NCBI RefSeq assembly: GCF_000143415.4
Contig: NW_003314304.1
Location: 1,565,548-1,629,547, forward strand
Direction: 5' to 3'
Origin: Selaginella moellendorffii
Taxonomy: Eukaryota; Plantae; Lycopodiophyta
Length of the DNA stretch: 64,000 nucleotides
Shown here: in pieces, positions 18,501-62,524 of the stretch
Position numbering within the stretch: the first letter of the stretch is position 1
How the letters are laid out: each line of letters starts with the position of its first letter
Notes under the pieces: model-generated
What the model saw: the letters and a program-made list of their open reading frames with translations, nothing else
Database searches by the model: none
What the model was told of the DNA's origin: nothing
Position numbers and translations under genes: made by a program

Positions 18501-19825
18501 NNNNNNNNNNNNNNNNNNNNNNNNNNNNNNNNNNNNNNNNNNNNNNNNNNNNNNNNNNNNNNNNNNNNNNNNNNNNNNNNNNNNNNNNNNNNNNNNNNNN
18601 NNNNNNNNNGCTTGAGCTTGATCAGCTTGCAATTGGGATTTTGTAGCGCTTTGCCCAACCATCCACCACAATCACCTGGATAAAGTGTAACCCTGAGTTC
18701 CTCCAAGCCACACTTAGCGCTGCTCAGGGCCTCACCCAGGCCCGTTGCATTGCTCAGGTCCTCACTCCGTCTCATTCCTTGGCAATTTAAAACTGACAGG
18801 CTGGTGCCCTCCTGAAGAGCCTTGCATACCCATGGCAACACTCCAGGATCACTTCCCGAATATAGGTATAGTCTTTGCAGCGAACAGTTTGAACAAGTGA
18901 GTGCCTTGAAGAGTGCTTCACCTGCCTCCTCTCGAAACGTTGCCACCAGTTTTACTAGCTTATTGCAAATGCCATTCTGAAATGCCTGTTCCCACCCTTC
19001 CTTGCCAATGTGGTTATCTTCGATGACTAACTCTTCCACCTTGCACTCCTGACTTGCCAGATCCCTACTCAATTTCCCAAATCCTTCCACTGTCATCCTG
19101 TTCCCCAGCAATTGGAGACGTTTCAAGTTGTTTCCTGGTTTCCTAAGGAGTTGGCTAAGGAGAGTCTCTGGGTTCCCAACCTTGTCCAACCAGAGCTCTG
19201 TCAAGCAGTCGAGCTGAGCAAAGGCCAACTCAAGCTCCTGAGGTGGTGTGAGGATGTCTTTGCCTCGCCAATCGAAACGTAGCCCTTTCAAGACCTTGAA
19301 TTCCTCTGTCATGAGAAGCTTTGCAAACCTCTGCACCTCAATCTGCCAAATATCCTGTCCCTGCTGAGGAGGAGCAATGCCCTCTGCCACCCTTTGCATT
19401 CGATCACTGGGAATGCCCAACCTACAAGCAACCCTGGCAGCGAACTGGATGAATCTGATGTCGAGCTGTGGTACCAAAGCGGCCTTGAGAATGTCAATGT
19501 GAGCAGCAGCAGCAGCAGCAGACGAACTGCCATCACCAGGAGCATCTCCCACATCCAGAGCCCCGTCTAAACTGGGTGGATTTGAAATGCACCAGTTGAG
19601 CACACCAATCAGATCCTCCTCTGTGCCTCCAAACCCCTCAACGGTAGCACTCACCTCATCAACAAACTCACCTTTGGATGCGTCAAGCGCCTCCAGCCTC
19701 CAGATCTTCCCACAATGAAACACAATCGCATTGAAGTGCCGCTTGTTGTCCCGCTTCGCTGCGAGAGCCTCCTTGATCTCCTTGACAGACAAACAGGGGA
19801 TCCACACTCGTCGCTCCTCCTCCAT
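15538..19825 (-). pseudogene. TRN1-like: ROCO/TRN1-like copy 2, two frameshifts in the Roc domain; could express LRR + P-loop only (669 aa)
   Basis: Net 31-bp loss at ~17944 (gca-caa-tgcgg versus gcatgcc...gacactctgcgg) and a 1-bp deletion at ~17851 (catggactc versus catggaactc) relative to copies 1, 4 and 5. Contains two N-runs. Confidence 0.85.
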
Positions 19826-22173: not shown

Positions 22174-23454
22174 TTATTGCTTACAATAGTTAAAGCACAA
22201 TACAGTGTTTAGTTTTATGGGATGACATATATATATAATTGAGGAGAGTAAACAAATTTCAAGATGAAGCTTGATTAGCTTGCAATTGGGATTTTGTAGC
22301 GCTTTGCCCAACCATCCACCACCATCACCTGGATAAAGTCTAACGCGGAGTTCCTCCAAGCCACACTTAGCGCTGCTCAGGGCCTCACCCAGGCCCGTTG
22401 CATTGCTCAGGTCCTCACTTCGGCAATCTAAAACTGACAGGCTGGTGCCCTCCTGAAGAGCCTTGCATACCCATGGCAACACTGCAGGATCCCGATATAG
22501 GCCTAGTCTTTGCAGCGAACAGCTTGGACTCGTGAGTGCCTTGAAGAGTGCTTCACCTGCCCCCTCTGGAAACGATGCCCTCAGTTTTACTAGCTTATTG
22601 CAAATGCCATTCTGAAATGCCTGTTCCCACCCTTCCTTGGCAATGCCCTCATCCAGGATGGCTAACTCTTCCACCTTGCACTCCTGACTTGCCAGATCCC
22701 TACTCAATTTCCCAAATCCTTCCACTGTCATCCTGTTCCCCACCAACCTGTTCGCCAGCAATTCGAGACGTTTCAAGTTGTTTCCTGCTTTCCTAAGGAG
22801 TTGGCTAAGGAGAGTCTCTGGGTTCCCAACATTGCGCAACCAGAGCTCTGTCAAGCAGTCGAGCTGAGCAAAGGCCATCTCAAGCTCCTGAGGTGGTGTG
22901 AGGATGTCTTTGCCTTCCCAATAGAAAGCTAGCCCTTTCAAGACCTTGAATTCCTCTATCATCAGAAGCTTTGCAAACCTCTGCACCTCAATCTGCCAAA
23001 TATCCTGTCCCTGCTGAGGAGGAGCAATGCCCTCTGCCACCCTTTGCATCCGATCACTGGGAATGCCCAACCTACAAGCGACCCTGGCAGCGAAGTGGAT
23101 GAATCTGATGTCGAGCTGTGGTACCAAAGCGGCCTTGAGAATGTCAATGTGAGCAGCAGCAGCAGCAGACGAACTGCCATCACCAGGAGCATCTCCCACA
23201 TCCAGAGCCCTGTCTAACCTGGGCGGGTTTGAAATGCACCAGTTGAGCACACCAATCAGATCCTCCTCTGTGCCTCCAAAACTCTCGACGGCAGCACTCA
23301 CCTGATCAACAAACTCACCTTCGTATGAGGGCTCCAGCCCACAATAAAACTCAATCGCATTGAAGTGCCGCTTGTTGTCCCGCTTCGCTGCGAGAGCCTC
23401 CTTGATCTCCTTGACAGACCAACAGCGGATCCACACTCGTCGCTCCTCCTCCAT
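22174..23454 (-). pseudogene. TRN1-like: ROCO copy 3, 3'-truncated: N-terminal LRR half fused to spacer-derived tail (426 aa ORF)
   Basis: Homology to the other copies stops after NCKLIKLHL at ~22261, where it joins AT-rich spacer sequence (gagagtaaacaaatttc). Confidence 0.85.
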
Positions 23455-23529
23455 GGAAGTTTGCCCTAGATCGAGTGATCATGAGTAAACTTCTCCCAGC
23501 TGTGGATAAGAATGTAAGCACGAGTTAGT

Positions 23530-23538
23530 TTAGGGTTT
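23530..23538 (-). promoter_or_regulatory. Telo-box AAACCCTAA between the divergent ROCO and kelch start codons (also 43889-43897)
   Basis: Exact motif 12 nt before the kelch ATG. Function inferred from known plant telo-boxes. Confidence 0.45.
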
Positions 23539-23550
23539 AGAACAGATAAA

Positions 23551-25619: not shown

Positions 25620-25649
25620 GAGTAAACTTGTAAAAGTGAACCGGTTTAG

Positions 25650-28061
25650 GGTTGATATTGATGCGATCTAGGTAAGCAAAGCTCTGGCCAAAGACTCTCA
25701 ATCGTTTTCCTTTTTGTCAGGCTAAACTCCACGAGGAGAAAGCAAAGAAGAGCGAAATTCATGTCGATGAGAATGTAGCAGCTCCTTCACCACAATGCAA
25801 TTGCTCTGTGCGTAAGAATTCGATTGAAATCTCCACTCTGGAAGCTCACATTCTCTAGAATTCTTCTTTTCTTGCGTTTCAGGTGACTGTAAATCCCGTC
25901 AAGGACACTGCGCATACCAATACAACATCGAGAAGAACGAGTGGAAGCCTGTCAAACTCTCCTCCCCCGAGAAGCGCTCACGAGGCGGTTGCGTGGAAAA
26001 ACTGGCTCTTCATTTTTGGTATGATGTATTTTTCCAGGACTTCTCTTGATTTTGGCAGTGTAGGTGGTGAATTCGGTTTCATCACTATAAGGTGTGTTTC
26101 TAGCTGACTTACAAGAGAGTTCTTGCAGGATTTATGGAGACTGGATTTAAACACAAATATCTGGCGGGAGCAGCTTCAACTAAAAGGCTGTCCAGGTGCT
26201 CGTTCCGGACATAGATTGGTATGTATTGCGCTTCTAAACATAATCTTTATTTTTTTTCTTTCTTGCCACATAAACATAAACTTATTCTATTTGGTGGATT
26301 TTATGACACGCTGAGGGAAGAAAGGTCGGCTGTTTCAGCAGTGTAGATGTTTAGTATTGAATTTTTGACACAGGTACTTCAATAATCTTTAAGTGCTGGA
26401 TTTAGACGATTATAAGGTTTGTTTCTGTCGCTCATCGTTCTTCCTTGTTTTTTAACAACTAAACTGATTTCCTTTTGCAGTGGCAAGAGATAAAACCCAA
26501 GCTTGGAGCTGCCTGGCCTTCAGCTGGAACTGGTTCTCAGCTTGCTGTTTATTTAGATGAGGTATTTGTCTACTAAAAGTTTAGTTTTGCGTGTTGTGAA
26601 CATTTTTTCTTTTCTAGATTTTCTTGTACGGTGGCTATTTCAAAGAGCCTGCCCCTGACAAAGATCAATCCGACAAAGGTGTAGTGCTCGCAGATATGTG
26701 GACGTTAGATCCACGGATTGGGAGTGGGACAAGGTTGGCTTGTTTTACATTCTCGTTTGGAGTTTTAGTTTTTCAATGTGTTTTGTGAAGGTGAAAAAAT
26801 CCGGTATGGCTCCTGGCCAAGAGCAGGATTTTTGTCCACATCTTGTTTGGTGGTGTAGTTGATGCTGATGAGTACGGTTTCAATGCATGCGTTGGAAAAA
26901 CTAATGTCTTTTGCAGGTGATTCCCTGCACAGCGTTTTTATGATCGAGATGTATATGCTTTCCAGATGGTTTGTATCTCGTCGATTTTTGTAAAAAATTA
27001 TCTAAACACCATCGCTCGCAGGTATCCTTTGGAGCTTCTCAAGCCAAAGAGCCTAAAGATTAAGGTATGGCAACCTGAGATTGTGTAGTGGTTAAGTGTG
27101 CATCCAAAGCAGAAGAAAGTGGTTGATCCAAATGTGGAAAATGCGTCTCAACGTTGAGCGTTCTGCTTGAAGGTTGTTGCCTGGTGGAAGAATGAATGCT
27201 GGAATGGTCGTTGGAAAGGATACTTTGTTTCTGTATGGAGGTATGAAAGAAGTCGGCAAAAAAAAAAATGACACGACGACCTTTCCTCGCTGGACCTTCG
27301 ATGTGTGGAAGTGCATTATTGAGGTTAGTATGATCGAGCCATCATCCAGCCTCATACTAATGTCTCAAGCAGGAAACACAAAGCGCGTGGATTGAAGCTA
27401 GTAAGGAGAAAGGCGAAACTGATGGTGACAACAGTGATGCTGGATCGATTAATAAAGGAAAAGACGAAGAGGACGATGACGAGGTAGTAAAAAAGAAGGA
27501 TGTAAGAAAACTTGTCGGTTTCCTTTTGTATTCTAGGATGCAGTGGAGTCACTGTGAAGAGGCAGCTGCTATTCTTAGGGGCGAAGGCAAAAAGCTGACA
27601 CAAAAAGCACGGAAATTAAAGATCGATCCGAGCTGGGCCTGGCTGATTCCCAACAAACACTTTTGGTGAGTGCTGATAGTAGTTCATCTTCCTGTTTTGT
27701 TATTGATTTGTCTTTCAGCCTGGAGAAACGCTGAGGGATTTTTTCTCTTGGACGATCATGTATTGGCAAATGGCACCTTACGATCACACCCAACACACTG
27801 GAAAGGTGACAACGCAGGTTTTCTTTCGCTCGTTCTTCATGCTCTATGCATCTATCAGGAGCTCAGGAAGGATGGATTTGACTTGGCAAAGACACGCTAC
27901 AGAGAACTTAAACCCGTCCTTGACAAGGTAAAGTGGTGTCTCAAGAAGGAATCCTCACAACAGCATTGTTTGATTTGCAGCTGGCGAGACTTGAAGCCGA
28001 CCACAACGCCGAAGAGGAGGCTACCAAACCTTCCAAAGAGCGCAGCAAGAAGAAACGATAA
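25650..28061 (+). pseudogene. KLHDC4-like: KLHDC4-like pseudogene, copy C (tandem to B; partner ROCO absent)
   Basis: Preceded by a remnant of the ROCO leader (gagtaaacttgtaaaagtgaacc, 25620-25642). Same exons and shared stop. Native-looking end aagaaacgataa. Confidence 0.85.
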
Positions 28062-28225
28062 GGTCCGCGAAAGTTCTAGCTGAAAATTAAATGAATAGAT
28101 TACAGTTATTCCCAGAGGTATGGTGAGTGCTTTCCTTTTACAATCTCTGCGTCGCATCATCAATGGTGATAGAAGGTTAATTAATAACGACGATCCGAAT
28201 GCATGAAATGGATATCCTGCTCTTA

Positions 28226-29354
28226 CCCAGGATAAAGTTTATATTTCCATGATTGCTCGCAGAGTGTATGGGCCTGAGATATGCCATGGCTTGCTTTCGG
28301 TTGCCTTTCGTAAAATGCAGAGTGAACACTCTCTCTACGCGGTCCATAAACTTTACTACCTGGAGTGCATTGGAGCAATGAAATTCCATCAGCAAGACCC
28401 TCAAAGGAAAATTTCTTCACACCTTGTCCGACGTTGCAAAGTGAGAGTTTTCGACCATCTTGAGGTAACTGCCAGACTCCAGTCACCTGAAAATTTAAAA
28501 AACCTTTTTAGAAGTCTGCAGTAATTTTCCATTTTCCATAAGTACCTTGTCATATTTCTTGCGGATCTTGACGAATGCCATCATGTTCAAGGAGCTGCCA
28601 AGTAAGTTTTCAACACTTTGAGAACATGGATCAATCGTGTAGAGGTCATTCACCTGAAGTTTCTTAGGAGTCGATGCCCACGATAAAATTCGACAAAGGC
28701 CGTCTGGAGGATCTTGGCTGCTCGCTGAACCTTTCCTTTGTTGCCGGGCTCCCCTTCAAGCTCTGAGATTCGTCATCTACAACATGGCAGAGATCAAACG
28801 ATTCCAAGTTAAGTGCTACAGATTTAGAGGCTGCTATAACGAACCTTGCATAGCGATGACCTCTTCCATTTGGATGTGAAGTTGCCGTGCTTGAGCATCG
28901 TACTCGTCTTCCTTGCATCTAAAAAACTTGTCCACTTTGTTGAGCTGATCGTCAAGGCCGAAAAAGAAGCTCTTTTCGTGATCCGATCGAGTTCCAAACA
29001 GCTCCGTCTCGTAAAAATCCTCGTCATCTCCAATTCTCGTCTTGTGCACAACCTGATCGTATTGAAGTGTTTTGTTTTGTCTTTACAGTCCAGAACATCC
29101 ATGGACGTTTCCGAGGATATGGATTGTTCGCAGCAGCTGCTCAGGATGGCGCTGGGATTTTGCAGCAAGTTTTCAAGCTTGCTCTTGTCAACCGAGAAGA
29201 CATTTGGATCGAACACCTTGTGCTGCTGGTTCTTGGTATGTAGGATCTGGGTTTTGATTCTCTTGACAACTTTCTTGAGCTGCTTGTAGTCGCAGTACTT
29301 CACCCGCCACTCTGGGACGAGCTGGCCCTCCAGCTGCTTCTGGAACTTCACCAT
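28226..29354 (-). pseudogene. PHO1-like: PHO1-family 5' fragment (SPX domain exons, no EXS), disrupted
   Basis: MVKFQKQLEGQLVPEWRVKYCDYKQLKK, FFFGLDDQLNKVDKFF, SLNMMAFVKIRKKYDK, SYLKMVENSHFATSDK, VVKFMDRVERVF..KQAMAYLRP. Intron-1 donor deleted and 1-bp frameshift in exon 3. Confidence 0.85.
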
Positions 29355-30319
29355 GTCTGAAAGCTTGGATTACCTGAGGCGAACATCGTCAGGAAAACGA
29401 TCAAGCAAGAGATGAAATACCTGGAGGAAATGGTGTCAAGTTCAGAATGCCTCTTCAAACTTTTCTGGCGCCTGTGCTCTGGAAGAACAGTGGCAGTGAG
29501 CATATGACGAGACAAATGGTGGCGTGGAATCATCAAATGCATTGTGCTGGGGAGGAGCACCACCAATTCTCACAAGAAAACAGCGTCTTAAGATCATCTC
29601 TGGAAAAAAGGGGGAAAACCTTCGTTTCTCACCGAGGCCAACGAACAATTACATAAGAATACGTTTTCCCGAGTGAAACTGACGCGGCAGAGTGCAAGAG
29701 GAGAGAAAAAGCAAGCGATCCATTGGCCTATGGAACTAAAAAAGGAAGCAAAAGGACAGGGAATGCAGGGGAATCTACATGAAAAGAAGCTGTCATAAGT
29801 TACACACTTCCACACACTCTCGCACACTTCAACTCTTTTCTTGTCAACACGAGTAATTTATGCGAGCGAAAGGGAATGAAAGAATCATTTGAGCATCTAA
29901 AGCATGGAAGGAAGCGAGGCACGTACTCTTTCTGGAAATCACGCTTATGGAGCGTTTTGTTTCGTCGGAGTCCCGATTGCTGGCGCAACCAAACTGAAAG
30001 AATCGCAAGCTCAGAACTACGAAAGCAAAGAAAAAACTTACTCTTGAAAGGGGACGAAGAGGAGAAGAATAACCGAAGGAGCCAAGCTTGGAATCGAGAG
30101 AGCTTGTCGAGTTCTCGAGGTGAGAGGCCTTTGCTCACTCAAAAACTTGGAGCCTTCTCTCCTTCTGCGAGAGGAAGAGGGAGCGGGGGGAGTTTGCAAT
30201 GAAGGTGGTGGTCGCATTTTATACTCTGGTTGGCCGACTAGAGACACACAAGACATGGAAGAATTGAAGCTGACTTTTTAGATCTAAAAAGGTCTAAAAA
30301 GGTCTAAAAAGGTCTGAAA

Positions 30320-32682: not shown

Positions 32683-32726
<44 letters not shown>

Positions 32727-42500: not shown

Positions 42501-43813
42501 GTTAACTCATCTTCTCCTCCCCATATTTCCAAATGGCGCAGCTTACAATGTGGACTTGAGAGGGCTGACCACAGACTGCTGTCACAGACCACTCCTCCTC
42601 CCTCGTTGCGAAAAGAAAGTTTAAGCTTGATCAGCTTGCAATTGGGATTTTGTAGCGCTTTGCCCAACCATCCACCACCATCACCTGGATAAAGTGTAAC
42701 GCTGAGTTCCTCCAAGCCACACTTAGCGCTGCTCAGGGCCTCACCCAGGCCCGTTGCATTGCTCAGGTCCTCACTCTGTCCTTGGCAATTTAAAACTGAC
42801 AGGCTGGTGCCCTCCTGAAGAGCCTTGCATACCCATGGCAACACTCCAGCATCACTATCCCATAGGGATAGTCTTTGCAGCGAACAGCTTGGACTCGTGA
42901 GTGCCTTGAAGAGTGCTTCACCTGCCTCCTCTGGAAACGGTGCCACCAGTTCTACTAGCTTATTGAAAATGCCATTCTGAAATGCCTGTTCCCACCCTTC
43001 CTTGCCAATGACGTTATCCAGGATGACTAACTCTTCCACCTTGCACTCCTGACTTGCCAGATCCCTACTCAATTTCCCAAATCCTTCCACTGTCATCCTG
43101 TTCCTAGTCAAGACGAGACGTTTCAAGTTGTTTCCTGGTTTCCTAAGGAGTTGGCTAAGGAGAGTCTCTGGGTTCCCAACCTTGTCCAACCTGAGCTCTG
43201 TCAAGCAGTCGAGCTGAGCAAAGGCCAACTCAAGCTCCTGAGGTGGTGTGAGGATGTCTTTGCCTCCTTGCCAACCTAGCCCTTTCCAGACTTTGAATTC
43301 CTCCGTCATCAGTAGCTTCGCAAACCTCTGTACCTCAATCTGGCCAATATCCTGTCCCTGCTGAGGAGGAGCAATGCCCTCTGCCACCCTTTGCATTCGA
43401 TCACTGGGAATGCCCAACCTACAAGCGACCCTGGCAGCGAAGTGGATGAATCTGATGTCGAGCTGTGGTACCAAAGCGGCCTTGAGAATGTCAATGTGAG
43501 CAGCAGCAGCAGCAGACGAACTGCCATCACCAGGAGCATCTCCCACATCCAGAGCCCTGTCTAAACAGGGCGGATTTGAAATGCACCAGTTGAGCACACC
43601 AATCAGATCCTCCTCTGTGCCTCCAAACCTCTCGACGGTAGCACTCACCTCATCAACAAACTCACCTTTGGATGAGTGAAGCCTCTCCAAGATCTCCCCA
43701 CAAAAAAACTGAATCGCATCGAAGTGCCGCTTGTTGTCCCGCTCCGCTGCGAGAGCCTCCTTGATCTCCTTGACAGAGTCACAGCCGATCCACACTCGTC
43801 GCTCCTCCTCCAT
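39533..43813 (-). pseudogene. TRN1-like: ROCO copy 4 with one nonsense codon at the LRR/Roc boundary; 567-aa LRR-only ORF 42110-43813
   Basis: CAG>TAG at 42110-42112 (SEAFK*RCSG versus SEAFKQRCSG). The frame is otherwise open to 39533. Confidence 0.87.
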
Positions 43814-43909: not shown

Positions 43910-46359
43910 ATGGGGAAGAAGGGGAAAGGGAAAAGAGAAGATCGTCGCCACGACAAGGTGTTAGACGAGGATGATATCGATGCGATCTTGGTAAGCAATC
44001 TCTGGCCAAAGACTCTCAATTGTTTTCCTTTTTGTCAGGCTAAACTCCACGAGGAGGAAGCAGAAATTCATGTCGATGAGAATGTAGCAGCTCCTTCACC
44101 AATGCAATTGCTCTGTGCGTAAGAATTCGATTGAAATCTCCACTCTGGAAGCTCACATTCTCTAGACTTCTTTTCTTGCGTTTCAGGTGACTGTAAATCC
44201 AGTCAAGGACACTGAGCTGATCGTCTATGGAGGTGAATACTAACAACGGTGACAAGGTTTGTGGTTAGTTTCGCTACGGTGATTTGATCTTCGTGTTTGC
44301 TATGCTAGACTTTACGTTTATGGTGATCTCTACCGATACAACATCGAGAAGAACGAGTGGAAGCCTGTCACCAGTCCAAACTCTCCTCCCCCGAGGCGGT
44401 TGCGTGGAAAAACTGGCTCTTCAGTTTTGGTATCCAGGAATTCTCTTGATTTTGGCAGTGTAGGTGGTGAATTCGGTTTCATGACTATAAGGTGTGTTTC
44501 TAGCTGACTTACAAGAGAGTTCTTGCAGGATTTATGGAGACTGGATTTAAACACAAATATCTGGCGGGAGCAGCTTCAACTAAAAGGCTGTCCAGGTGCT
44601 CGTTCCGGACATAGATTGGTATGTATTGCGCTTCTAAACATAATCTTTATTTTTTTCTTTCTTGCCACAGAAACATAAACTTATTCTATTTGGTGGATTT
44701 TATGACACGCTGAGGGAAGAAAGGTCGGCTGTTTCAGCAGTGTAGATGTTTAGTATTGAATTTTTGACACAGGTACTTCAATAATCTTTAAGTGCTGGAT
44801 TTAGACGATTATAAGGTTTGTTTCTGTCGCTCATCGTTCTTCCTTGTTTTTTAACAACTAAACTGATTTCCTTTTGCAGTGGCAAGAGATAAAACCCAAG
44901 CTTGGAGCTGCCTGGCCTTCAGCTGGAACTGGTTCTCAGCTTGCTGTTTATTTAGATGAGGTATTTGTCTACTAAAAGTATAGTTTTGCGTGTTGTGAAC
45001 ATTTTTTCTTTTCTAGATTTTCTTGTACGGTGGCTATTTCAAAGAGCCTGTGCTTGTTTTACATTCTCGTTTGGAGTTTTAGTTTTTCAATGTGTTTTGT
45101 GAAGGTGAAAAAATCCGGTATGGCTCCTGGCCAAGAGCAGGATTTTTGTCCACATCTTGTTTGGTGGTGTAGTTGATGCTGATGAGTACGGTTTCAATGC
45201 ATGCGTTGGAAAAACTAATGTCTTTTGCAGGTGATTCCCTGCACAGCGTTTTTATGATCGAGATGTATATGCTTTCCAGATGGTTTGTATCTCGTCGATT
45301 TTTTAAAAATTATCTAAGCACCATCGCTCGCAGGTATCCTTTGGAGCAAAGAGCCTAAAGATTAAGGTATGGCAATCTGAGATTGTGTAGTGGTTAAGTG
45401 TGCATCCAAAGCAGAAGAAAGTGGTTGATCCAAATGTGGAAAATGCGTCTCAACGTTGAGCGTTCTGCTTGAAGGTTGTTGCCTTGTGGAAGAATGAATG
45501 CTGGAATGGTCGTTGGAAAGGATACTTTGTTTCTGTATGGAGGTATGAAAGAAGTCGGCAAAAAAAAAGTGACACGACGACCTTTCCTCGCTGGACCTTC
45601 GATGTGTGGAAGTGCATTATTGAGGTAGTATGATCGAGCCATCATCCAGCCTCATACTAATGTCTCAAGCAGGAAACACAAAGCGCGTGGATTGAAGCTA
45701 GTAAGGAGAAAGGCGAAACTGATGGTGACAACAGTGATGCTGGATCGATTAATAAAGGAAAAGACGAAGAGGACGATGACGAGGTAGTAAAAAAGAAGGA
45801 TGTAAGAAAACTTGTCGGCTTCCTTTTGTATTCTAGGATGCAGTGGAGTCACTGTGAAGAGGCAGCTGCTATTCTTAGGGGCGAAGGCAAAAAGCTGACA
45901 CAGAAAGCACGGAAATTAAATATCAATCCGAGCTGGGCCTGGCTGATTCCCAACAAACACTTTTGGTGAGTGCTGATAGTAGTTCATCTTCCTGTTTTGT
46001 TATTGATTTGTCTTTCAGCCTGGAGAAACGCTGAGAGATTTTTTCTCTTGGACGATCATGTATTGGCAAATGGCACCTTACGATCACACCCAACACACTG
46101 GAAAGGTGACAACGCAGGTTTTCTTTCGCTCGTTCTTCATGCTCTATGCATCTATCAGGAGCTCAGGAAGGATGGATTTGACTTGGCAAAGACACGCTAC
46201 AGAGAACTTAAACCCGTCCTTGACAAGGTAAAGTGGTGTCTCAAGAAGGAATCCTCACAACAGCATTGTTTGATTTGCAGCTCGAGACTTGAAGCCGACC
46301 ACAACGCCGAAGAGGAGGCTACCAAACCTTCCAAAGAGCGCAGCACGAAGAAACGATAA
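43910..46359 (+). pseudogene. KLHDC4-like: KLHDC4-like pseudogene, copy D
   Basis: MGKKGKGKRE start and ..EEEATKPSKERSTKKR* end. Shared stop and an extra internal deletion at ~45050. Confidence 0.85.
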
Positions 46360-46556
46360 GGTCCGTGATCTCTGAAAGTTCTAGCTGAAAATTAAATGAA
46401 TAGATTACAGTTATTCCCAGAGGTATGGTGAGTGCTTTCCTTTTCTAGAGGCAATGCCATTGACATGAAACCACTAGTATACAATCTCTGCGTCGCATCA
46501 TCAATGGTGATAGAAGGTTAATTAATAACGACGATCCGAGTGCATGAAATGGATAT

Positions 46557-47672
46557 CCAGGATAAAGTTTATATTTCCATGATTGCTCGCAGAGTGTATG
46601 GGCCTGAGATATCCCATGGCTCGCTTTCGGTTGCCTTTCGTAAAGTGCAGAGTGAACACTCTCTCTACGCGGTCCATAAACTTTACTACCTGCAGTGCAT
46701 TGGAGCAATGAAATTCCATCAGCAAGACCCTCAAAGGAAAATTTCTTCACACCTTCCGACGTTGCAAAGTGGTAACTGCCAGACTCCAGTCACCTGAAAA
46801 TTCAAAAAAACCTTTTTAGAAGTCTGCACTAATTTTCCATTTTCCATAAGTACCTTTTCATATTTCTTGCGGATCTTGACGAATGCCATCATGTTCAAGG
46901 AGCTGCCAAGTAAGTTTTCAACACTTTGAGAACATGGATCAATCGTATAGAGGTCATTCACCTGAAGTTTCTTAGGAGTCGAAGCCCACGATAAAATTCG
47001 ACAAAGGCCGTCTGGAGCATCTTGGCTGCTCGCTGAACCTTTCCTTTGTTGCCGGGGCTCCCCTTCAAGCTCTGAGATTCGTCATCTACAACATGGCAGA
47101 GATCAAACGATTCCAAGTTAAGTGCCACAGAATTAGAGGCTGCTAGAACGAACCTTGCATAGCGATGAGCTCTTCCATTTGGATGTGAAGTTGCCGTGCT
47201 TGAGCATCGTACTCGTCTTCCTTGCATCTAAAAAAGTTGTCCACTTTGTTGAGCTGATCGTCAAGGCCGAAAAAGAAGCTCTTTTCGTGATCCGATCGAG
47301 TTCCAAACAGCTCCGTCTCGTAAAAATCCTCGCCATCTCCAATTCTCGTCTTGTGCACAACCTGATCATATTGAAGTGTTTTGTTTTGTCTTTACAGTCC
47401 AGACCATCATCACAAACCATGGACGTTTCCGAGGATATGGATTGTTCGCAGCAGCTGCTTAGAATGGCGCTGGGATTTTGCAGCAAGTTTTCAAGCTTGC
47501 TCTTGTCAACGGAGAAGACATTTGGATCGAACACCTTGTGCTGCTGGTTCTTGGTATGTAGGATCTGGGTTTTGATTCTCTTGACAACTTTCTTGAGCTG
47601 CTTGTAGTCGCAGTACTTCACCCGCCACTCTGGGACGAGCTGGCCCTCCAGCTGCTTCTGGAACTTCACCAT
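46557..47672 (-). CDS. PHO1-like: PHO1-family 5' fragment; exons 1-4 splice in frame and give a potential stand-alone SPX protein
   Basis: Exon 1 47672-47418, exon 2 47361-47154, exon 3 from 47085 and exon 4 (SLNMMAFVKIRKKYEK) have compatible phases and GT-AG borders. A shortened exon 5 (41 nt) shifts the frame to a stop just after the SPX domain. Confidence 0.6.
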
Positions 47673-48246
47673 GTCTGAAAGCTTGGATTACCTGAGGCGA
47701 ACATCGTCAAGAAAACGATCAAGCAAGAGATGAAATACCTGGAGGAAATGGTGTCAAGTTCAGAATGCCTCTTCAAACTTTTCTGGCGCCTGTGCTCTGG
47801 AAGCACAGGAAGAACAGTGGCAGTGAGCATATGACGAGACAAATGGTGGCGTGGAATCATCAAATGCATTGTGCTGGGGAGGAGCACCACCAATTCTCAC
47901 AAGAAAACAGCGCCTTAAGATCATCTCTGGAAAAAAGGGGGAAAGCCTTCGTTTCTCACCGACGCCAGCGAACAATTACATAAGAATACGTTATCCCGAG
48001 TGAAACTGACGCAGCAGAGTGCAAGAGGAGAGAAGAAGCAAGCGATCCATTGGCCTATGGAACTAAAAAAGGAAACAAAAGGACAGGGAATGCAGGGGAA
48101 TCTACAGGAAAAGCTGTCGTAAGTTACACACTTACACACACTCTCACACACTTCAACTCTTTTCTTGTCAACACGAGTAATTTATGCGAGCGAAAGGGAA
48201 TGAAAGAATCATTTGAGCATCTAAAGCATGGAAGGAAGCGAGGCAC

Positions 48247-49050
48247 GATGATTCGTCCCTGCTTATTTTTTCGCCTATCGTTGGCTGTGTCTCCTACATT
48301 AGGACCAAAGGTCTTCCCGCATAACCATCAAGCCACGTTTCGTGGATTCGTAATGCACTCGCATAAGGCATGCCATCCTGTAAGAGAAGCAAAGCTGAAT
48401 AACTCCACCAAGACAAAGCGATAAGAACGCCACCTCATATTGAAACACACGGCGGTTGTCAAGCGATAATTCAGCTCTTCGTCTGGAATGCACCAGCAAA
48501 AGAATAATGCATATGACTCAGAAAGAAGAACTTGACGTACCCGTTCGCTGCCACTTATCAAACTTGACAACCCAAGTAACGTCCCCAACCCCCATCAACC
48601 CACATACAGAAGTTCTTTCCCCTGGGAATACCGTGGAGGGGACGTAGAATCTCAACGCTTCTACGAAGATCGTCTTCTAGTTTCCACGGAGTGACCAGCG
48701 TTGAGTCAGGGGCCTGCCAGCCATTTCGTTGCTCAACCATCAAAAACTACTAAACACGAGGAACTTACCATTGGCCTTTTCAAGTGTTCAAACACCTCGT
48801 GGGAGCTTTCAACCTCGCCTCGTAACCATCTCACACTCCACGTCCGATCAACCCTTCGGTGTCCCCAGCAGTGAGCTGGCTCAGTAAGTCGGCATCCCTG
48901 GGCGAAACACAAGGATCAAACTTGAACTCTCGGATAGCTTGTAAGATTCCCGAAGCGCATCTTTCAGTGCCACGAAAGATCTTGGGATTGTCTTTGGCAT
49001 TATCAAGGTACCACTACGTAAGATCTTCAAACGCATTCCCGACCTGAGAT
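48247..49050 (-). pseudogene. Partial copy of unidentified gene X
   Basis: 48247-48705 aligns by eye with 63591-64000. Confidence 0.4.
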
Positions 49051-49071
49051 CGTCAGTGAGTGAGTGAGTGA

Positions 49072-49302
49072 TCAATCGACTTCAAGAACTGAAACGTCTT
49101 TGACGTCCAGCGCCTCCTCCTGATTGAGCACCGAGATCCACGTCGCGCTCTCCTTGGCAGTTATCTTGTCTTGCAAGCACTTGGACTGCCTCACGAGCTT
49201 CCTGATCTTCCCGATATCCGGGGACATGTGTCGGATCACCGCAGTGAGAACTCCAACCTTCCACACCTTCTTGAGATCATGGGGCTTCTTATACGGATCC
49301 AT
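49072..49302 (-). CDS. EIN3-like: EIN3 mini-ORF (76 aa): native start codon fused in frame to the distal DNA-binding-domain helices
   Basis: [63 protein letters not shown]. Upstream leader matches that of the 30974 fragment (tccgcaagATG). The homology is secure; expression is unknown. Confidence 0.6.
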
Positions 49303-52300: not shown

Positions 52301-55300
52301 AGGGTATACTCCCTTAGCCAAAGATGCAATTGTTGATTCTATGTTATAGGTAAAAATTTGATAATTAGAATTGTTGCACGTTTCAATATTAATTTTGGGA
52401 CCAACTTCTAAAGTTTTACCAAGATTATTTTAAATTAATAAGTTCAAAACTTTTTCTTGACAATCATGAGAAGTCAAAATATCACCAAGGTTAACTTTAA
52501 CCATATAATATCCAATCTCATTACAACCAAAATGTGGCTTAGATTATTCAATGGCAATTCAAGAGCTGGTCCTCTTTAACAAGTTCCATATATAAATAAT
52601 ATAGTGATTTACCCTTTCTTTTTTTGTAAGTTATTGTTTAAAAAGAGTTTATTTTAAATTCACTTAAATCTTTCTCTTGAGAAACTACTTAGCTTGGCAT
52701 AAAATCTTAGCAACCCAATACTAAATACTAGTCCAAAAATTTGAGAAAAACATATAAACCAGTATAGTAATGATAATTTGAAGCTTTTTCTTGCCAATTT
52801 ACAAGGTATAATAAATGATTGAGATGTTGGTTCTCTAAACAAAGATGAGATAAAGATTGGGAGTGATCTTAGGCAAACATCTCTAAGCCAAACTTCTTCA
52901 TTTGGCTCATAAACTTGGTTGAGTTTGCAAAGGTTTCGATAAAGTTTATTTTTGAATTTTTGCATGTCATAAATGCTTATCAAGGCAATGTAAATAGGAG
53001 TATACTATAATTATGGCTTGTCATTTTTGTTATGGTGGTGGTGATTGCAACTATCACCATGCTTTCAACATCTTTATAAATGATTAATTTTTTTTTACTT
53101 TAGGATCATCTAAAGGAGTCTCACTTATAATTTCTATAGGCCCTGATATTAATTTGGGTGTTTCCTAACTTTAAGATGTGTTTTTGTAACCACATCAACT
53201 TTGTACTTGGTCTAAATGCTCTATGTGTCTAGTTCCACTTTTGGATACCCAAATGACTAGATAACTTTTTATGAAGTCCAAATTTAAAAACTTATATTGG
53301 TATTAGAAAAGTGTAAGGTGTGACTCTATTAGTTGATTAAAAAAATCACACCACATGTTAAGATTGATATTTAATAGGTTTAGTTTACTCTAATTTCAAC
53401 TCGAGGGGTAAGGTGTTAAAAGAGTAAGGCTCTTAGAAGAGCCCTACTCTTGCAAAAAAACATGATGGATTATAAACAACCAAAGATAATAACTTAAAAA
53501 ATTATTAATATTATTTTAAATATAGAAATGTACTCTTTGTTCCAATTAGTTGTAAGTATTAGGTTATTTGAGATTAAGCATCTTTAAATAGTATTGGGTT
53601 AGATGACCTTCTAGAAAGCCCAAATTCAGGAGATTATAGTGCCATAAATAATATAAGTTAATGTTTGTAAAGAAACTAGCAAGAAAGAAAACAATTTAAA
53701 ATTAAACAACCTTTTAAAAATGAAATATTTACTAGAATGTTCAAAATAAGTATTTAGAAAGCATTTTTATTAGAGCTACTCTCAAGTAATACTTGATGTG
53801 TTGCAAATGATTTCATAGTAAAAAATATCTTTATACTTCATTTTTAAAATAATAATTAGTGGTGTTTAATACATATTTTGTATTTTCTAAACAATATCTA
53901 GAGACACTCAAAAACCTTTTGCTGTTAAATTATTGTCATTCAAGCACTTGTTTACAATAGTTAAAACACAATACAATGTTTGGTTTTATGGGATGGTAAA
54001 TATATGTAATTGAGGAGAGTAAACAGATTTCTATATAGACTTTAGTAAGTAAATGGAATTGTGAACAATGACAATTTTCATAAGTCTTTAAACTGTAGTT
54101 TGTAACATATTTTAGCTAAATATTAATTTAAAAAATAAGTTGAAGTTGGTAAAGATAATATAAAGTTATCTCCTACAGTATGTGATGATAAATAACAATT
54201 AAGCATTTGTATTTAGTTTTGAAATGCATTACCTCAAAAGGTTTATTAATAATAATTAACTTTATTCCTAGAATTGTTTTACCAAAGATGCCAAAATGAA
54301 AAAATGCCACTAACATGAGATCATCTGAGTAGCTTTTCTTTAAAGCATTCAATACTAAAACATCAGAATAAATATAAAAATTATTTTATAGCAATATGCA
54401 AAGATACCTCATCGACTTATATCAAGAAATGTAGCATAATCATAGTAAAAATGCCCTACATAGTCTTTGTTAAATAAAACTAAAATCATAGTTATATTTG
54501 AATGTAAAATAGCTTTGTAAATCTATACTGTTTTATAATCCAAGGTTATAGGATGGATATTAAAATATTTGGCCATGATTGTCTTTTGATCAATTTCTTT
54601 CACAATTTTAGTCTTCTTATCAAAATATGATTAATATGACATCATTTGACTAGCTTTTCCTTCACTTGAATTATTAAACATTCAACACTGAAATAAACTT
54701 GGAACATTAGAATAAACATGAAATAATATTTTAAAGCAATAATGCAAATTTACCTCATTGACTTCTATTACAAAATATAGCCCAATCATTCCAAAGACAT
54801 ATAGCAATAACTTTATAAAGCATATTTATTTACTTTCATCTTGCCAAATCATCTCGTAAAAATATAGATTGATGATCTGATTTAGAATGGTTTTTGTTAG
54901 ATAAAACCAAAAACTTAAATGTTAAATACCTTTGTAGACCCATATTTTTCTTTCATCCAGGATTATGGGATGAAAAACAAAACATATGATTAATGATTTA
55001 CTTTAAATACCCTACATAGCTTCTGTTAGATAAAACTAAAAGTATGGATACATTTCAATATAAAATACCTTTGTAAATATATATTGTTTTATCATCTAAA
55101 TTATAAGATAAAAAATAAATTATTTGGTAGTTTTTCCTTCATTTAAAGCATTAAAAATTCAACACTGAAATGAACTTGAAACATTAGAATAAACAGGAAA
55201 GAATAATTTGGAGTTATAATGCAAACTTACCTCCTTAACTTCTGCTATAAAAAATACCCCAATCATACCAAAGACATATAGTAATAACTATATAAAGCAT

Positions 55301-55398
55301 GTTTATTTACCTTTGTTTTACTAAACCACCTCATAAAAATTTAGATTGATGATCTGCTTTAAAATGGTGTTTGTTAGAAAAAACTAAAAACTTAAATA

Positions 55399-58300
55399 TT
55401 AAATACCTTTGCAGACCCATATTTTTCTTCCCTCTAAGATTGTGGGATGAAGAGCAAAATGTTTTTCCATGATTGTCTCCTGTTTTTCTTCTTTCCCAAT
55501 TGTAGTTGTCACTAGCTTAAATATCTCTTGCACATCTTCTGCTTTGGGATTTGTAGTTAACTTATTTTTGAGAAGACATGAATCCAAAAAGCTTATGAGG
55601 CTTCCCTTGATCTCATCCACCATTGCATTCATTATTTCTCCAACACCAGCAAAATGTCCTCCAACTTTAGCCCCAATAAATAATAGGATCAATGTATGTT
55701 TAAATATTGGAGCAAATTTCTTGAGCCAGTTTGGTGGGAGATCCAATTCAACACCTACAGAACTCTTCACTTGATGACCTTTAAAAGTTCCTTGAGGCCA
55801 TTCACACAAGTAGTGAAGTTTAACATGTGTTCCCAATATTTTGCTGTAATTTTTCCACCTATTATTCTCATCAAGAATATATGGATATTTTGGGCAATCT
55901 GTCTCCAATTTCAATAATACTTGAAAACACGTTGTATGGATTGCATTCACTTTATCCATGATAGACTTGAGTCCATTCTTGAGCTCGTTAAGGCTTACTT
56001 CAATGTTATCAAGTTTTGTATCCAACTTGTCAAACCGATTCTCCATTTTATCAAACTTCTTATCAAAATATCTAAAAATTGCATCGAGTTTTGGGTCTTC
56101 AATGTTTGGAAACTCAACAACATTTAATGATGCTTTGGGAATTGTGACTTCTCCAACCTCCTCATAGTCCTTTAAGAGTTCATGAAGCTCAACAAACTTA
56201 TTCACCACTTCATATTTTTGCTCATTAGGCATCAATAACTTGGCCAAAGCATTCTCATCTGAGACCTTCAAATCGTTAATCACATCCCAACTCTCTGCTT
56301 CATGTGAATCATTCCAAGTGTGAGAGTAGTCTAGACCGCTTTCTCTTGCTTCACATTTGACTTTCTTTAGTGGATAAATAACTGCATCCCATGATTTTGG
56401 TTTGCCCACATTATTTAGTATCCTTCTCCACACATAACCACGTCTCATCACATTTTCTTCAATTTCCAAAAATGGGCAATCCTCTATACATACCCCAATA
56501 ATGCAATTTCTAATTTTTTCCATCCATCCTTCAGCTTCTTTTTCCAAATCCGGCCTTGGTGCATTCTCTACCTTTTTTGGGTAGTAGATGATGACATCAA
56601 CCCATTGCCTATCTTTCCAATTGTCTGTGTCTCCCCCAACTCTAACAATTGTCTTGATAAGGTTTTCTTTCAAAGCCACCCATCCATTCCCAGGCCTAAA
56701 ACCTTTCTTGCTTAATTTGTGAAGTTTAACTTGGATCTTTGTGAAAATACTTGCAGGAAACAATTTCAAGTCCTTGTCTTTGCATTCAAACCTCCTGCCC
56801 CAGTAGTTGTGGTTTTTTTGAGTGTCAATTGGCACTGAGGGTGACAATAAATATTCTGGAGGTGAATATTCTTCTTGCAATAATGTTGGCATTATCGGCT
56901 CTTTGGGCAAGTTATGCCAATTCCCATCCCATTTATCATCCCAAGGCAATATCACTCCCATCTCATGGAGCACTCCAAGAATGTACTCCACTATTTTGTC
57001 TTGGTTCCCACATTGTTGCTTCAACTGATGTTTAACTCTGTGTGTTTCCATTTGACTTTTGAATTTGCTTGTCTCAGTATGTATGAAGAGTTGCACCACA
57101 TCCCTCATAAACCATTGGACATCTAAGATGACAAATTGAGACACAATGTCGTCCTCTTCATGTCCCAAGCCAAAGTAAATTGCATCACCAGAATCATGTA
57201 GAAATTGCAAGACGAATTTGAGAACATTCTTGGAACTCCTGTGAGGCAAGAGAATTTTGCCAACTTTTTCTAGGGGTATGACCTTCTTGTGACTTGGATC
57301 TTGTACCAATTTCCTCTTTGCTTTGAGACATTCCCGTGGTATTTGTTGCTGGGCTGACAGCAGTTCCTCCAAGCAACTCCCCAACATGGTTTTTATCCCC
57401 CTTAAATCTTTCACTTGAGTGGCCACCACCTCAAAACAAAAGTCATTCCCAAACTCAAGTACTTGCCAATAGCCTTTGTCGGAGATTATTGCAGAAACCA
57501 CCTCCTTTGGGTCAAAGTCGGGTTCTGGAGTGAAAAAGTTCAAGGCAATCAAGACCCTGGGCTTCCTTTTGGGTGAGGCTGATTGATGTGAAGCGATGAA
57601 CCTCAGCCAGTAAACCAAATTCTGCTTGAAAACGTCACAATTGTCATCCTCCACCTTGCATACGATCAAGAAGAGATCCTTCTCACTTCCTCTGAGAAAG
57701 TACTGGTGGAAAGCATGGAACTCTTCCTGTCCAGCCAGGTCGCAAATGAGCAGCTTTTGTTTGGTGGTCGCATAGACAAGTGGTTGCAGCTCAATGCCTG
57801 CTGTTGAAGCATGCCTTTGGAGACATGATGGAAACCAAGACACTCTGCGGCAGAGGTTGTTTTTTATTGTGGTCTTTCCAACCCTGCTATCACCACACAA
57901 GAAGAGTTTTGCTGTTGATGGGTTGTCAAAGTCCTTGAATGCACTCTTCTGGAAGATTGCATTCCGCTCTAAAAGACCAGAACACCTCTGCTTGAAAGCT
58001 TCAGAAGCTTCGGAATCACTGCCTATATCAAGCTCTTCCACGAGGCTTTGGTAGTTTTCCTCCAGGGCAGCCAGAATTTGTCTTTTCTGTGCATCACTAT
58101 CAAGAAAACGAGCCCTGAATCTGCGCACCTTGCATTTTGGATCCCCCAGCAACTGGCAAAGCTCTTCCAGCTTTTCAATTTCTTCCTGACGTATTTCCAA
58201 GTCTTCAATGCTGCTTCCCAAAAGGCACCTCCATGGCAGCTCCGACTCACATGACAAAGCTTTCAGAGACTTGCAGCTGGTGATAGCTTTCCAAAAGGGC

Positions 58301-59709
58301 TCCCCATTCGTGATTTTGCAGCTCCATATACCCAAATGCTCCAGTTGGCTCTTCTCTATGCCCTCGGCAAACTCCAACGGTAACTCTGTCCTGCTACCCC
58401 ATATTTTCAAATGGCGCAGCTTACAATGTGGACTTGAGAGAGCTGACCACAGACTGCTGTCACAGACCATTCCTCCTCCCTCGTTGAACCAATCAAGGTC
58501 AAGGTTGAGCTTGATCAGCTTGCAATTGGGATTTTGTAGCGCTCTGCCCAACCATCCACCACCATCACCTGGATAAAGTCTAACGCAGAGTTCCTCCAAG
58601 CCACACTTAGCGCTGCACAGGGCCTCACCCAGGCCCGTTGCATTGCTCAGGTCCTCACTCTGTCTCATTTCTCGGCAATCTAAAACTGACAGGCTGGTGC
58701 CCTCCTGAAGAGCCTTGCATACCCATGGCAACACTCCAGCATCAGTACCCCAAAATAGGTATAGTCTTTGCAGCGAACAGTTTGGACTCGTGAGTGCCTT
58801 GAAGAGTGCTTCACCTGCCTCCTCTGGAAACGAATATGCCTCCAGTGCCACTAGCTTATTGAAAATGCCATTCTGAAATGCCTGTTCCCACCCTTCCTTG
58901 TCAATGTCCTTATCTTCGATGACTAACTCTTCCACCTTGCACTCCTGACTTGCCAGATCCCTACTCAATTTCCCAAATCCTTCCACTGTCATCCTGTTCC
59001 CCCGCAATTCGAGACGTTTCAAGTTGTTTCCTGCTTTCCTAAGGAGTTGGCTAAGGAGAGTCTCTGGGTTCCCAACCTTGTCCAACCAGAGCTCTGTCAA
59101 GCAGTCGAGCTGAGCAAAGGCCAACTCAAGCTCCTGAGGTGGTGTGAGGATGTCTTTGCCTCCCCAACGGAAATCTAGGCCTTTCAAGACTTTGAATTCC
59201 TCTGTCATCATCAGTAGCTTTGCAAACCTCTGCACCTCAATCTGGCCAATGTCCTGTCCCTGCTGAGGAGGAGCAATGCCCTCTGCCACCCTTTGCATCC
59301 GATCACTGGGAATGCCCAACCTACAAGCGACCCTGGCAGCGAAGTTGATGAATCTGATGTCGAGCTGTGGTACCAAAGCGGCCTTGAGAATGTCAATGTG
59401 AGCAGCAGCAGCAGACGAACTGCCATCACCAGGAGCATCTCCCACATCCAGAGCCACGTCTAAACTGGGTGGATTTGAAATGCACCAGTTGAGCACACAA
59501 ATCAGATCCTCCTCTGTGCCTCCAAACCTCTCGACGGCAGCATTCACCTTATCAACAAACTCACCTTTGGATGGGACAAGCTCCCACATGTGCCCACAAG
59601 GAAACGCAATCGCATTGAAGTGCCGCTTGTTGTCCCGCTTCGCTGCGAGAGCCTCCTTGATCTCCTTGACAGAGAAACAGTAGATCCACTCTCGTCGCTC
59701 CTCCTCCAT
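55399..59709 (-). CDS. TRN1-like: Intact, intronless LRR-Roc-COR (ROCO) protein, TORNADO1-like, 1436 aa (copy 5)
   Basis: Uninterrupted ORF. RI-like LRRs (CLTELWL, NLKRLEL, KVEELVI, SLQRLYL, GLEELCV, KLRHLKI, QLEHLGI). Roc P-loop GDSRVGKTT, switch I TAGIEL, switch II ICDLAGQEEFHAFH. COR-like region LQFLHDSGDAIYF..VILDVQWF. Coiled coil, then a TRN1-type tail (HYLCEW..FAP..IGAKVGGHFAG..IWVCK). Confidence 0.9.
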   Translation of the reverse strand: MEEERREWIYCFSVKEIKEALAAKRDNKRHFNAIAFPCGHMWELVPSKGEFVDKVNAAVERFGGTEEDLICVLNWCISNPPSLDVALDVGDAPGDGSSSAAAAHIDILKAALVPQLDIRFINFAARVACRLGIPSDRMQRVAEGIAPPQQGQDIGQIEVQRFAKLLMMTEEFKVLKGLDFRWGGKDILTPPQELELAFAQLDCLTELWLDKVGNPETLLSQLLRKAGNNLKRLELRGNRMTVEGFGKLSRDLASQECKVEELVIEDKDIDKEGWEQAFQNGIFNKLVALEAYSFPEEAGEALFKALTSPNCSLQRLYLFWGTDAGVLPWVCKALQEGTSLSVLDCREMRQSEDLSNATGLGEALCSAKCGLEELCVRLYPGDGGGWLGRALQNPNCKLIKLNLDLDWFNEGGGMVCDSSLWSALSSPHCKLRHLKIWGSRTELPLEFAEGIEKSQLEHLGIWSCKITNGEPFWKAITSCKSLKALSCESELPWRCLLGSSIEDLEIRQEEIEKLEELCQLLGDPKCKVRRFRARFLDSDAQKRQILAALEENYQSLVEELDIGSDSEASEAFKQRCSGLLERNAIFQKSAFKDFDNPSTAKLFLCGDSRVGKTTIKNNLCRRVSWFPSCLQRHASTAGIELQPLVYATTKQKLLICDLAGQEEFHAFHQYFLRGSEKDLFLIVCKVEDDNCDVFKQNLVYWLRFIASHQSASPKRKPRVLIALNFFTPEPDFDPKEVVSAIISDKGYWQVLEFGNDFCFEVVATQVKDLRGIKTMLGSCLEELLSAQQQIPRECLKAKRKLVQDPSHKKVIPLEKVGKILLPHRSSKNVLKFVLQFLHDSGDAIYFGLGHEEDDIVSQFVILDVQWFMRDVVQLFIHTETSKFKSQMETHRVKHQLKQQCGNQDKIVEYILGVLHEMGVILPWDDKWDGNWHNLPKEPIMPTLLQEEYSPPEYLLSPSVPIDTQKNHNYWGRRFECKDKDLKLFPASIFTKIQVKLHKLSKKGFRPGNGWVALKENLIKTIVRVGGDTDNWKDRQWVDVIIYYPKKVENAPRPDLEKEAEGWMEKIRNCIIGVCIEDCPFLEIEENVMRRGYVWRRILNNVGKPKSWDAVIYPLKKVKCEARESGLDYSHTWNDSHEAESWDVINDLKVSDENALAKLLMPNEQKYEVVNKFVELHELLKDYEEVGEVTIPKASLNVVEFPNIEDPKLDAIFRYFDKKFDKMENRFDKLDTKLDNIEVSLNELKNGLKSIMDKVNAIHTTCFQVLLKLETDCPKYPYILDENNRWKNYSKILGTHVKLHYLCEWPQGTFKGHQVKSSVGVELDLPPNWLKKFAPIFKHTLILLFIGAKVGGHFAGVGEIMNAMVDEIKGSLISFLDSCLLKNKLTTNPKAEDVQEIFKLVTTTIGKEEKQETIMEKHFALHPTILEGRKIWVCKGI

Positions 59710-62492: not shown

Positions 62493-62524
62493 GGTCCGTG
62501 ATCTCTGAAAGTTCTAGCTGAAAA

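Follow-up and report, generated by a model that had tools for sequence, protein, structure and literature searches.

This report concerns a 64-kb stretch of the Selaginella moellendorffii genome (contig NW_003314304.1, assembly GCF_000143415.4; hereafter the window), in which we found five tandem copies, c1 to c5, of one large intronless gene on the minus strand. The gene encodes a series of leucine-rich repeats (LRRs) followed by a Roc GTPase domain and a probable COR domain. The array units are 91–98% identical to one another and are spaced ~13–20 kb apart, with c3 lying only 3.6 kb from c2. The spacers are GC-poor (23–30% GC) and the genes are GC-richer. Four of the five copies are broken (Table 1). 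Gene nucleotide (nt) and codon numbers follow c5 throughout.

We compared the array with five further paralogues and their flanks (g1 to g5) and with one partial copy, g5b. Two of them, g1 (locus L001) and g3 (L003), lie on scaffold GL377608.1, which is the scaffold of the window itself; g2 (L002) and g4 (L004) lie on scaffold GL377709.1, treated here as haplotype 2; and g5 and the partial g5b (L005) lie on scaffold GL377737.1. Like c5, the genes g1, g2, g3 and g4 are single uninterrupted open reading frames (ORFs) of ~4.3 kb each, and thus several intact genes exist once the added paralogues are counted.

Table 1. Gene copies, LRR stretches, candidate exchanged tracts and accompanying repeats in the window (window coordinates; aa, amino acids)
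Feature	Position	Strand	Description
c5	55399–59709	minus	Sole intact copy in the window; ORF of 1436 aa without intron
c5 LRR horseshoe	58000–59202	minus	~aa 170–570; from AlphaFold model and Foldseek
c5 motif-bearing LRR stretch	58500–59090	minus	Gene nt 620–1210; from coordinate mapping, codon table and patch table
Counterparts of 58500–59090	42622–43194 (c4); 22266–22844 (c3); 18610–19194 (c2); 5308–5845 (c1)		
c4	39534–43813	minus	Full-length; one in-frame TAG at 42110–42112 (c5 codon 574); LRRs ~42122–43303
c3	22259–23454	minus	Truncated: N-terminus and first ~8 LRRs (c5 nt 1–1211); ORF continues to 22174 in unrelated sequence
c2	15539–19825	minus	Broken: 31-nt deletion near 17947 and 1-nt deletion near 17853; assembly gaps 18245–18609 (within LRRs) and 16281–16525
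c1	2181–6534	minus	19-nt frameshifting deletion near 6278; assembly gap 5846–6050 in LRRs
Extra LRR-like insertion in c1	5519–5599		81 nt (27 residues)
c4/c5 near-identical tract	57214–57858 (c5); ~41336–41980 (c4)	minus	c5 nt 1852–2496; differs at 1 of 645 positions
c5/g4 difference patch	56471–56706	minus	Gene nt 3004–3239 (236 nt); holds 15 of 31 differences from g4
Co-amplified unit stretches	7225–9209; 25915–28139; 28171–30264; 45051–46515; 46512–48247; 60362–62648		Neighbour genes or fragments
62-nt downstream repeats	1703–1764; 15061–15122; 39056–39117; 54922–54982		Final ~62 nt of the coding sequence

The gene belongs to the LRR-Roc-COR (ROCO) family and lacks an NB-ARC domain. In the intact c5 protein the Roc domain is matched by Pfam PF08477 at aa 601–713 with 44.4 bits (cut-off 27), and the P-loop GxxxxGKT and the DxxGQ motif are present in the translations. 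A probable COR-A domain follows directly (PF16095, aa 791–915, E=1.1e-7); its score of 32.2 bits is just below the curated 35.3, and the precomputed Pfam lists of all eight paralogues retrieved by a word search include PF16095. These eight are all S. moellendorffii proteins that carry the NCBI names 'ROCO family protein' or 'protein TORNADO 1'. Scanned against Pfam, the intact c5 protein gave neither an LRR match nor an NB-ARC domain; its matches were limited to Roc, Ras, COR-A and a single weak coiled-coil-type match. The repeats were instead recognized from structure. An AlphaFold model of aa 1–600 (mean predicted local distance difference test score, pLDDT, 78.8) contains 15 strand/helix repeats at aa 177–561 with a period of ~28 residues, and Foldseek matched it to the ribonuclease inhibitor 4peq_D (template modelling score, TMt, 0.64) and to NLRP LRR domains with E ~1e-10, which places the repeats in the 28–29-residue ribonuclease-inhibitor type. 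The ROCO assignment thus follows from the Pfam Roc and COR-A matches together with the modelled repeats and their Foldseek LRR matches. Two further features of the protein were observed. At codon ~605 of c5 (window ~57895) the P-loop reads GDSRVGKT, as opposed to GASRVGKT in the other window copies read. Beyond COR, the ~500 C-terminal residues of c5 (aa ~930–1436, window 55399–56920) belong to no Pfam family; they include the weak coiled-coil-type match at aa 1219–1255 and have a hydrophobic, glycine-rich end.

An earlier reading of the window, made from its letters alone (the sequence-only reading), had proposed that short variable LRR motifs are shuffled as micro-cassettes among the copies by gene conversion or unequal crossing-over. 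The motif variants that it listed are exact in the translations. GLEEL is followed by SVT in c1 and c4, RVT in c2, RVR in c3 and CVR in c5; VIED occurs in c2 and c5 and ILD in c3 and c4; LNCQG is found in c2 and c4 and LDCR in c3 and c5; LRASFPEGA is shared by c1 and c3, LVAxFxEEA by c2 and c4, and WLDK by c2 and c5. Shared states are encoded by the same codons, for example GAA versus CTG at codon 265, AAT versus GAT at codon 344 and AGG versus GTG at codon 290. We also confirmed that the copies cannot be placed on one tree: over nt 1–1205 the 36 parsimony-informative sites of the five copies display all ten possible two-copy groupings, and therefore no single tree fits. The c1 LRRs at 4769–6052 fall outside the range given for the sharing, 18610–59200.

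Although the sharing is real, the shared units are not cassettes in any extended sense, as each consists of only one to three variable codons between invariant residues. The contrast between VIED and ILD, for instance, reduces to codons 263 and 265, with I264 and D266 invariant. When hypervariable patches are taken whole, nearly every copy has an allele of its own. Patch-level characters were tried in a four-gamete-type test and set aside as uninformative, almost all patch alleles being unique to one copy.

The hypervariable codons recur every ~28 residues. Of the 74 codons at which at least three residues occur, 59 lie in a predicted strand or in the next five residues (Fisher p=1e-19). At these 74 codons, which were chosen for being variable, non-synonymous divergence (dN) is 0.59 and synonymous divergence (dS) 0.16; dS is 0.035 at the other N-terminal and LRR codons and 0.084 in the rest of the gene. 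Silent diversity in the LRR framework is ~0.02, half of that in the rest of the gene (0.042). We looked for islands of old silent divergence beside the hypervariable codons and found a slight rise only, with 7 of 67 adjacent codons variable as against ~6% elsewhere, a comparison of few sites. Local hypermutation was rejected as the main cause of the variation because shared residues nearly always use one codon and the changes are overwhelmingly non-synonymous; mutagenesis directed at adenines, as in diversity-generating retroelements (DGRs), was rejected because the substitutions in the alignment involve all bases. The N-terminal 170 residues of c5 (window 59200–59709) are also hypervariable, at codons 10, 12, 35–46, 60–61 and 79–85, and some of these codons lie in predicted strands (aa 8–10 and 33–38). 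Judging from the model, the variable surface may extend past the LRR horseshoe into the N-terminus.

To detect exchange we used the pairwise homoplasy index (PHI) permutation test in our own implementation. Because of the LRR gaps in c1 and c2, only nt ~715–1205 can be compared in all five window copies, and there PHI was not significant (p=0.06–0.56), which made the paralogues beyond the window necessary. With the eight full-length genes PHI gave p=0.0005 for each of the whole gene, nt 1–1750 and nt 1751–4311, and every leave-one-out run gave p<=0.005. Incompatibility between sites also grows with distance. In the LRR half it is 0.06 within a codon, 0.35 at 3–30 nt and 0.41 at 31–75 nt, and reaches a plateau of 0.54 at 76 nt or more; in the Roc-COR part it climbs from 0.24 to 0.47 over ~300 nt. 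Site compatibility in the LRR region is thus lost within ~75–150 nt, roughly one repeat, so that neighbouring repeats assort almost freely, as the sequence-only reading had held.

Trees drawn from different parts of the gene disagree as well. When the gene was divided into six segments, each segment rejected most of the other segments' maximum-likelihood trees in the approximately unbiased (AU) test, with p from 0.045 to 1e-92, the lowest values coming from the 3' segments. A GENECONV-type permutation test on the longest shared runs found significant runs of 80–600 nt among the paralogues, namely c4-c5 (nt 1895–2490), c4-g1 (208–475), c2-g5 (120–237) and g1-g5 (1464–1589), with further runs in c5-g4 and c1-c4; a c4-g3 run at nt 1180–1278 was borderline. 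Painting each gene as a mosaic of the others with a copying model, which we used descriptively only since it is parameter-dependent and over-switches at saturated codons, gave finer mosaics with shorter segments in the LRR half. Together with the low silent diversity of the LRR framework, these shorter segments would fit exchange that is commoner, or more often retained, in that half.

The clearest exchanged tract within the window lies downstream of the LRRs, where c5 and c4 are near-identical over 645 nt (Table 1) and only 93–95% identical on either side. The longest c4-c5 run within it (63 polymorphic sites, p=0.0003) agrees with the copying-model painting. In the Roc-COR part the 18 consecutive informative sites at nt 2242–2496 group c1 with c2 and c4 with c5, and from nt 2706 the grouping switches to c1 with c4 and c2 with c5; PHI for this part of the window copies gave p=0.0005. 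A second, shorter tract is seen between c5 and g4. These two genes are otherwise ~99% identical in their 3' half, nearly half of their differences fall in the 236-nt patch of Table 1, and many sites of the patch have both states represented among other paralogues. The patch has the look of a short conversion in either c5 or g4.

The 5' part of c2 recurs outside the window. A segment made up of 2.4 kb of upstream sequence and the first 951 nt of the gene is found at 98.9% identity on GL377737.1 (L005:15828–19224); the two versions of the 951 nt differ at 12 positions, and 6 of the 12 are inside two hypervariable patches. The counterpart gene there, g5b (L005:18264–21343), has a frameshift near aa 199 and a deletion of gene nt ~2480–3849. 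The gene would therefore appear to be a pseudogene in both places, with different damage on each scaffold. In c1, 17 nt of the extra LRR-like insertion listed in Table 1 match the framework of the repeat before it; repeat number has changed in this one copy.

The most direct view of exchange came from comparing haplotypes. L001 and L002 share single-copy neighbours (aldose epimerase, pseudouridine synthase and Myb upstream; SPX-EXS downstream), and these flanks are 99–99.8% identical. Substitution divergence between the two loci is 0.7% upstream, 4.9% in the paralogous block (L001:10001–14600) and 1.3% downstream, and the step in divergence coincides with the edge of paralogy. Within the block, g1 and g2 differ at 224 positions that are clumped along the gene (p=0.0002), and at 133 of them (59%) both states are present in other paralogues. 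At this position, paralogue-matching differences outnumber background divergence about sevenfold. As both flanks are unchanged, unequal crossing-over offers no explanation here, and non-reciprocal patches internal to the gene, that is, conversion, are required.

A different kind of event is seen in g4 on haplotype 2, which is a hybrid. Its 5' flank is 97–99.5% identical to that of c4, and its 3' half and 3' flank are 98.5–99.8% identical to those of c5; its LRR region is no better than 92–97% identical to either. This composition fits a c4/c5 hybrid that would have arisen by unit-scale unequal exchange, with a junction in the 5' half, plus further conversion. The distance between the two boundary genes is 76 kb on one scaffold and 49 kb on the other. 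We had considered g3 and g4 as alleles, and rejected this pairing because g4 is closer in its flanks to the c4 and c5 units than to g3.

The array units carry additional neighbour genes or gene fragments that were co-amplified beside the ROCO gene (Table 1). Some of these stretches are 93–95% identical to part of the SPX-EXS gene that adjoins g1 (L001:17278–19394), and others are 96–98% identical to a Kelch/DUF4110-type gene and an EIN3-like region upstream of g3 and g4. In addition, the final ~62 nt of the ROCO coding sequence recur ~420–480 nt downstream of each gene, inside a stretch of 3' flank that is tandemly duplicated over 477 nt (repeat family D1).

We consider it likely that two processes together shape this locus, namely diversifying selection with recurrent substitution and germline ectopic recombination among the paralogues. 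In the first, strong diversifying selection would drive repeated substitution at a few codons of the LRR beta-strand and the loop that follows it, leaving near-unique patches in each copy and single-codon states that recur in different copies. In the second, ectopic homologous recombination, mostly non-reciprocal gene conversion in patches of ~80–700 nt with occasional unit-scale unequal crossing-over, would leave each gene mosaic and the LRR framework unusually uniform, with blocks of about one repeat or more passing from copy to copy. The codon-level combinatorial pattern would then be mostly the first process overlaid on the second. What the sequences show directly is the mosaic structure with its dependence on distance, the excess allelic divergence limited to the paralogous block, and the hybrid composition of g4; that conversion produced the exchanges, and any direction given to them, we infer. 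With the added copies, the claim of gene conversion or unequal crossing-over among paralogues is strongly indicated by PHI, the AU tests, the shared runs, the allelic block and the g4 hybrid.

Several results weigh against a role for exchange in the LRRs, and some of them favor an account in which no exchange occurs there and the sharing reflects only recurrence or convergence of substitutions at a handful of hypervariable codons, the copies being related by a near-star tree. PHI is non-significant for the five window copies, as described above, and for the motif-bearing stretch (nt 501–1210) in seven genes (p=0.16); for nt 1–1750 it gave p=0.09 in the five gap-free intact genes and p=0.92 in g1–g4 alone. 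Incompatibility between adjacent codons is already 0.35–0.45, a scale finer than ordinary conversion tracts would produce, and two sites within a single codon (codon 10) conflict. Some shared residues use different codons, as at R375, encoded by the unrelated codons AGG in c2 and CGC in c3, and most patches, taken whole, are each confined to a single copy. Finally, we fitted a tree with site-rate classes to nt 1–1750 of the eight full-length genes and simulated 200 tree-like data sets. These gave 41% incompatible site pairs overall (maximum 48.9%) with no distance effect, so that about four fifths of the observed incompatibility can be produced without recombination and saturation at a few fast codons accounts for most of what looks like free assortment. 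Codon-scale sharing, the original argument for exchange, is by this null and by the patch table largely what saturation would be expected to yield.

The same simulations nevertheless argue against substitution as the whole explanation, as the observed incompatibility (51.8%) and the observed far-minus-near difference (0.076) were each reached in 0 of 200. When pairs within the same codon were excluded, PHI over nt 1–1750 remained significant for framework sites only (p=0.0002) and for hypervariable sites only (p=0.029). Trees are mutually rejected among the three N-terminal and LRR segments (AU p=0.045 to 3e-5), and the significant runs in the LRR half (c4-g1, c2-g5 and g1-g5) span several patches together with the silent sites between them. 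Had residues been shared by convergence, different codons would be expected to encode them, but 124 of 134 shared-residue groups at hypervariable codons (93%) use a single codon. Moreover, both states occur in paralogues at 79 of the 125 g1/g2 differences in nt 1–1750. We therefore regard substitution without LRR exchange as unlikely, and favor selection and recombination acting together.

The remaining points against this combined account concern the data. All sequences come from the single assembly, with gaps inside c1 and c2; the source is a Sanger assembly containing both haplotypes; and the allelic pairing of scaffold segments is drawn from flank identity alone. The mosaics might accordingly be artefacts in which reads of different units or haplotypes were merged, which the runs of N within c1 and c2, the 91–98% identity of the units and the presence of both haplotypes would facilitate. 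L001 to L004, however, contain no N at all, and in the Roc-COR part PHI is as strong in g1–g4 alone (p=0.0002). The motif combination of c2 recurs, as noted, on a separately assembled scaffold, and the g1/g2 divergence steps exactly at the edge of the paralogous block. Blocks of ~100–300 nt are also shorter than a Sanger read and hence are probably not the product of read joining. Assembly artefact is in our view an improbable source of the mosaics.

The sequence-only reading had further suggested that disabled copies serve as donors, as in pseudogene-templated receptor diversification. Tracts common to broken and intact copies exist (c4-c5 nt 1852–2496, c4-g1 nt 184–538, and c3 with g1 and g4 at nt ~793–921), but the direction of transfer cannot be read from them. 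That broken copies are kept as donors for a few expressed acceptors in a programmed, possibly somatic, mechanism is very improbable despite such tracts and the broken state of four of the five window copies, since all pair types share tracts, including intact-intact and broken-broken pairs, several genes rather than a single acceptor are intact, some of the breaks adjoin assembly gaps, and exchange in the GTPase and C-terminal half is as strong as in the LRRs, which a device dedicated to receptor diversification would not need.

Germline recombination under diversifying selection matches the dynamics already known from plant resistance-gene clusters, here in a further gene family. As in clusters of nucleotide-binding LRR (NLR) and Cf-type genes, which evolve through birth and death of members, conversion, unequal crossing-over and selection on xxLxLxx residues, a tandem array contains intact and broken members, dN is well above dS at solvent-exposed LRR strand positions, conversion tracts connect paralogues and haplotypes, and copy number differs between haplotypes. 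In the SH3 cluster of coiled-coil NLR (CNL) genes of coffee, conversion between paralogues and between sub-genomes occurs together with positive selection on the xxLxLxx residues (PMC3113787). S. moellendorffii itself has been listed with ~2 NLRs (PMC3782705). The Selaginella family is unlike NLR clusters in that a Roc GTPase and COR replace NB-ARC and the LRRs are of the ribonuclease-inhibitor type; pathogen recognition is only conjectural here. New combinations would presumably be retained by selection as the LRR surface binds variable ligands, which would make the protein a candidate non-NLR immune receptor. The fuller proposal, that the locus is a working intracellular immune repertoire in which c1–c4 are kept as a reservoir and germline conversion of LRR segments into the few intact genes, more than point mutation, is the main source of new allelic specificities, we regard as unlikely.

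A closer parallel in architecture is provided by the LRR-ROCO genes of brown algae, in which single-LRR exons are shuffled under diversifying selection and which have been proposed as immune receptors (Teng et al. 2024, PMC11378527, citing Zambounis et al. 2012). There every 23-residue LRR has a 72-bp phase-2 exon to itself, and the units are shuffled, duplicated and alternatively spliced (PMC11378527). The two families have in common the order LRR-Roc-COR, a concave LRR face under diversifying selection, and the proposal that new binding specificities arise as LRR units are reassorted. Unlike the algal genes, the Selaginella gene is one uninterrupted ORF with no LRR-per-exon structure; its repeats differ from one another in framework sequence, and homologous exchange carries variation from paralogue to paralogue within corresponding repeat positions. 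Our literature search found no relevant paper joining Selaginella with ROCO.

By name and domain order the family also resembles Arabidopsis TORNADO1 (TRN1), which has the same order of domains and lends its name to several of the paralogues at NCBI. TRN1, a conserved gene that acts in development, is present in few copies, whereas the Selaginella family is hypervariable, tandem and accompanied by pseudogenes. As in the chicken immunoglobulin (Ig) and lamprey variable lymphocyte receptor (VLR) systems, short homologous tracts are shared between broken or partial and full-length genes for a repeat-built binding surface. Those systems act in somatic cells, require cytidine deaminases and transfer sequence one way, to a single expressed locus; unlike them, exchange in Selaginella extends beyond the binding domain.

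One lesson of this locus is that motif-level combinatorial sharing among a few hypervariable paralogues is by itself weak evidence for conversion; silent or framework sites, distance dependence and a saturation null are needed before conversion can be concluded. The g1/g2 comparison provides a usable measure, since alleles there diverge about seven times as much as their flanks, and do so only in the paralogous block; conversion therefore supplies most of the allelic novelty at this position. If these ROCO proteins are receptors, they would represent a second type of intracellular LRR receptor in which a GTPase switch replaces NB-ARC. Their history would then be an independent arrival at the regime of resistance-gene clusters, with a hypervariable surface, exchange among paralogues, pseudogene-rich arrays and copy-number change between haplotypes.

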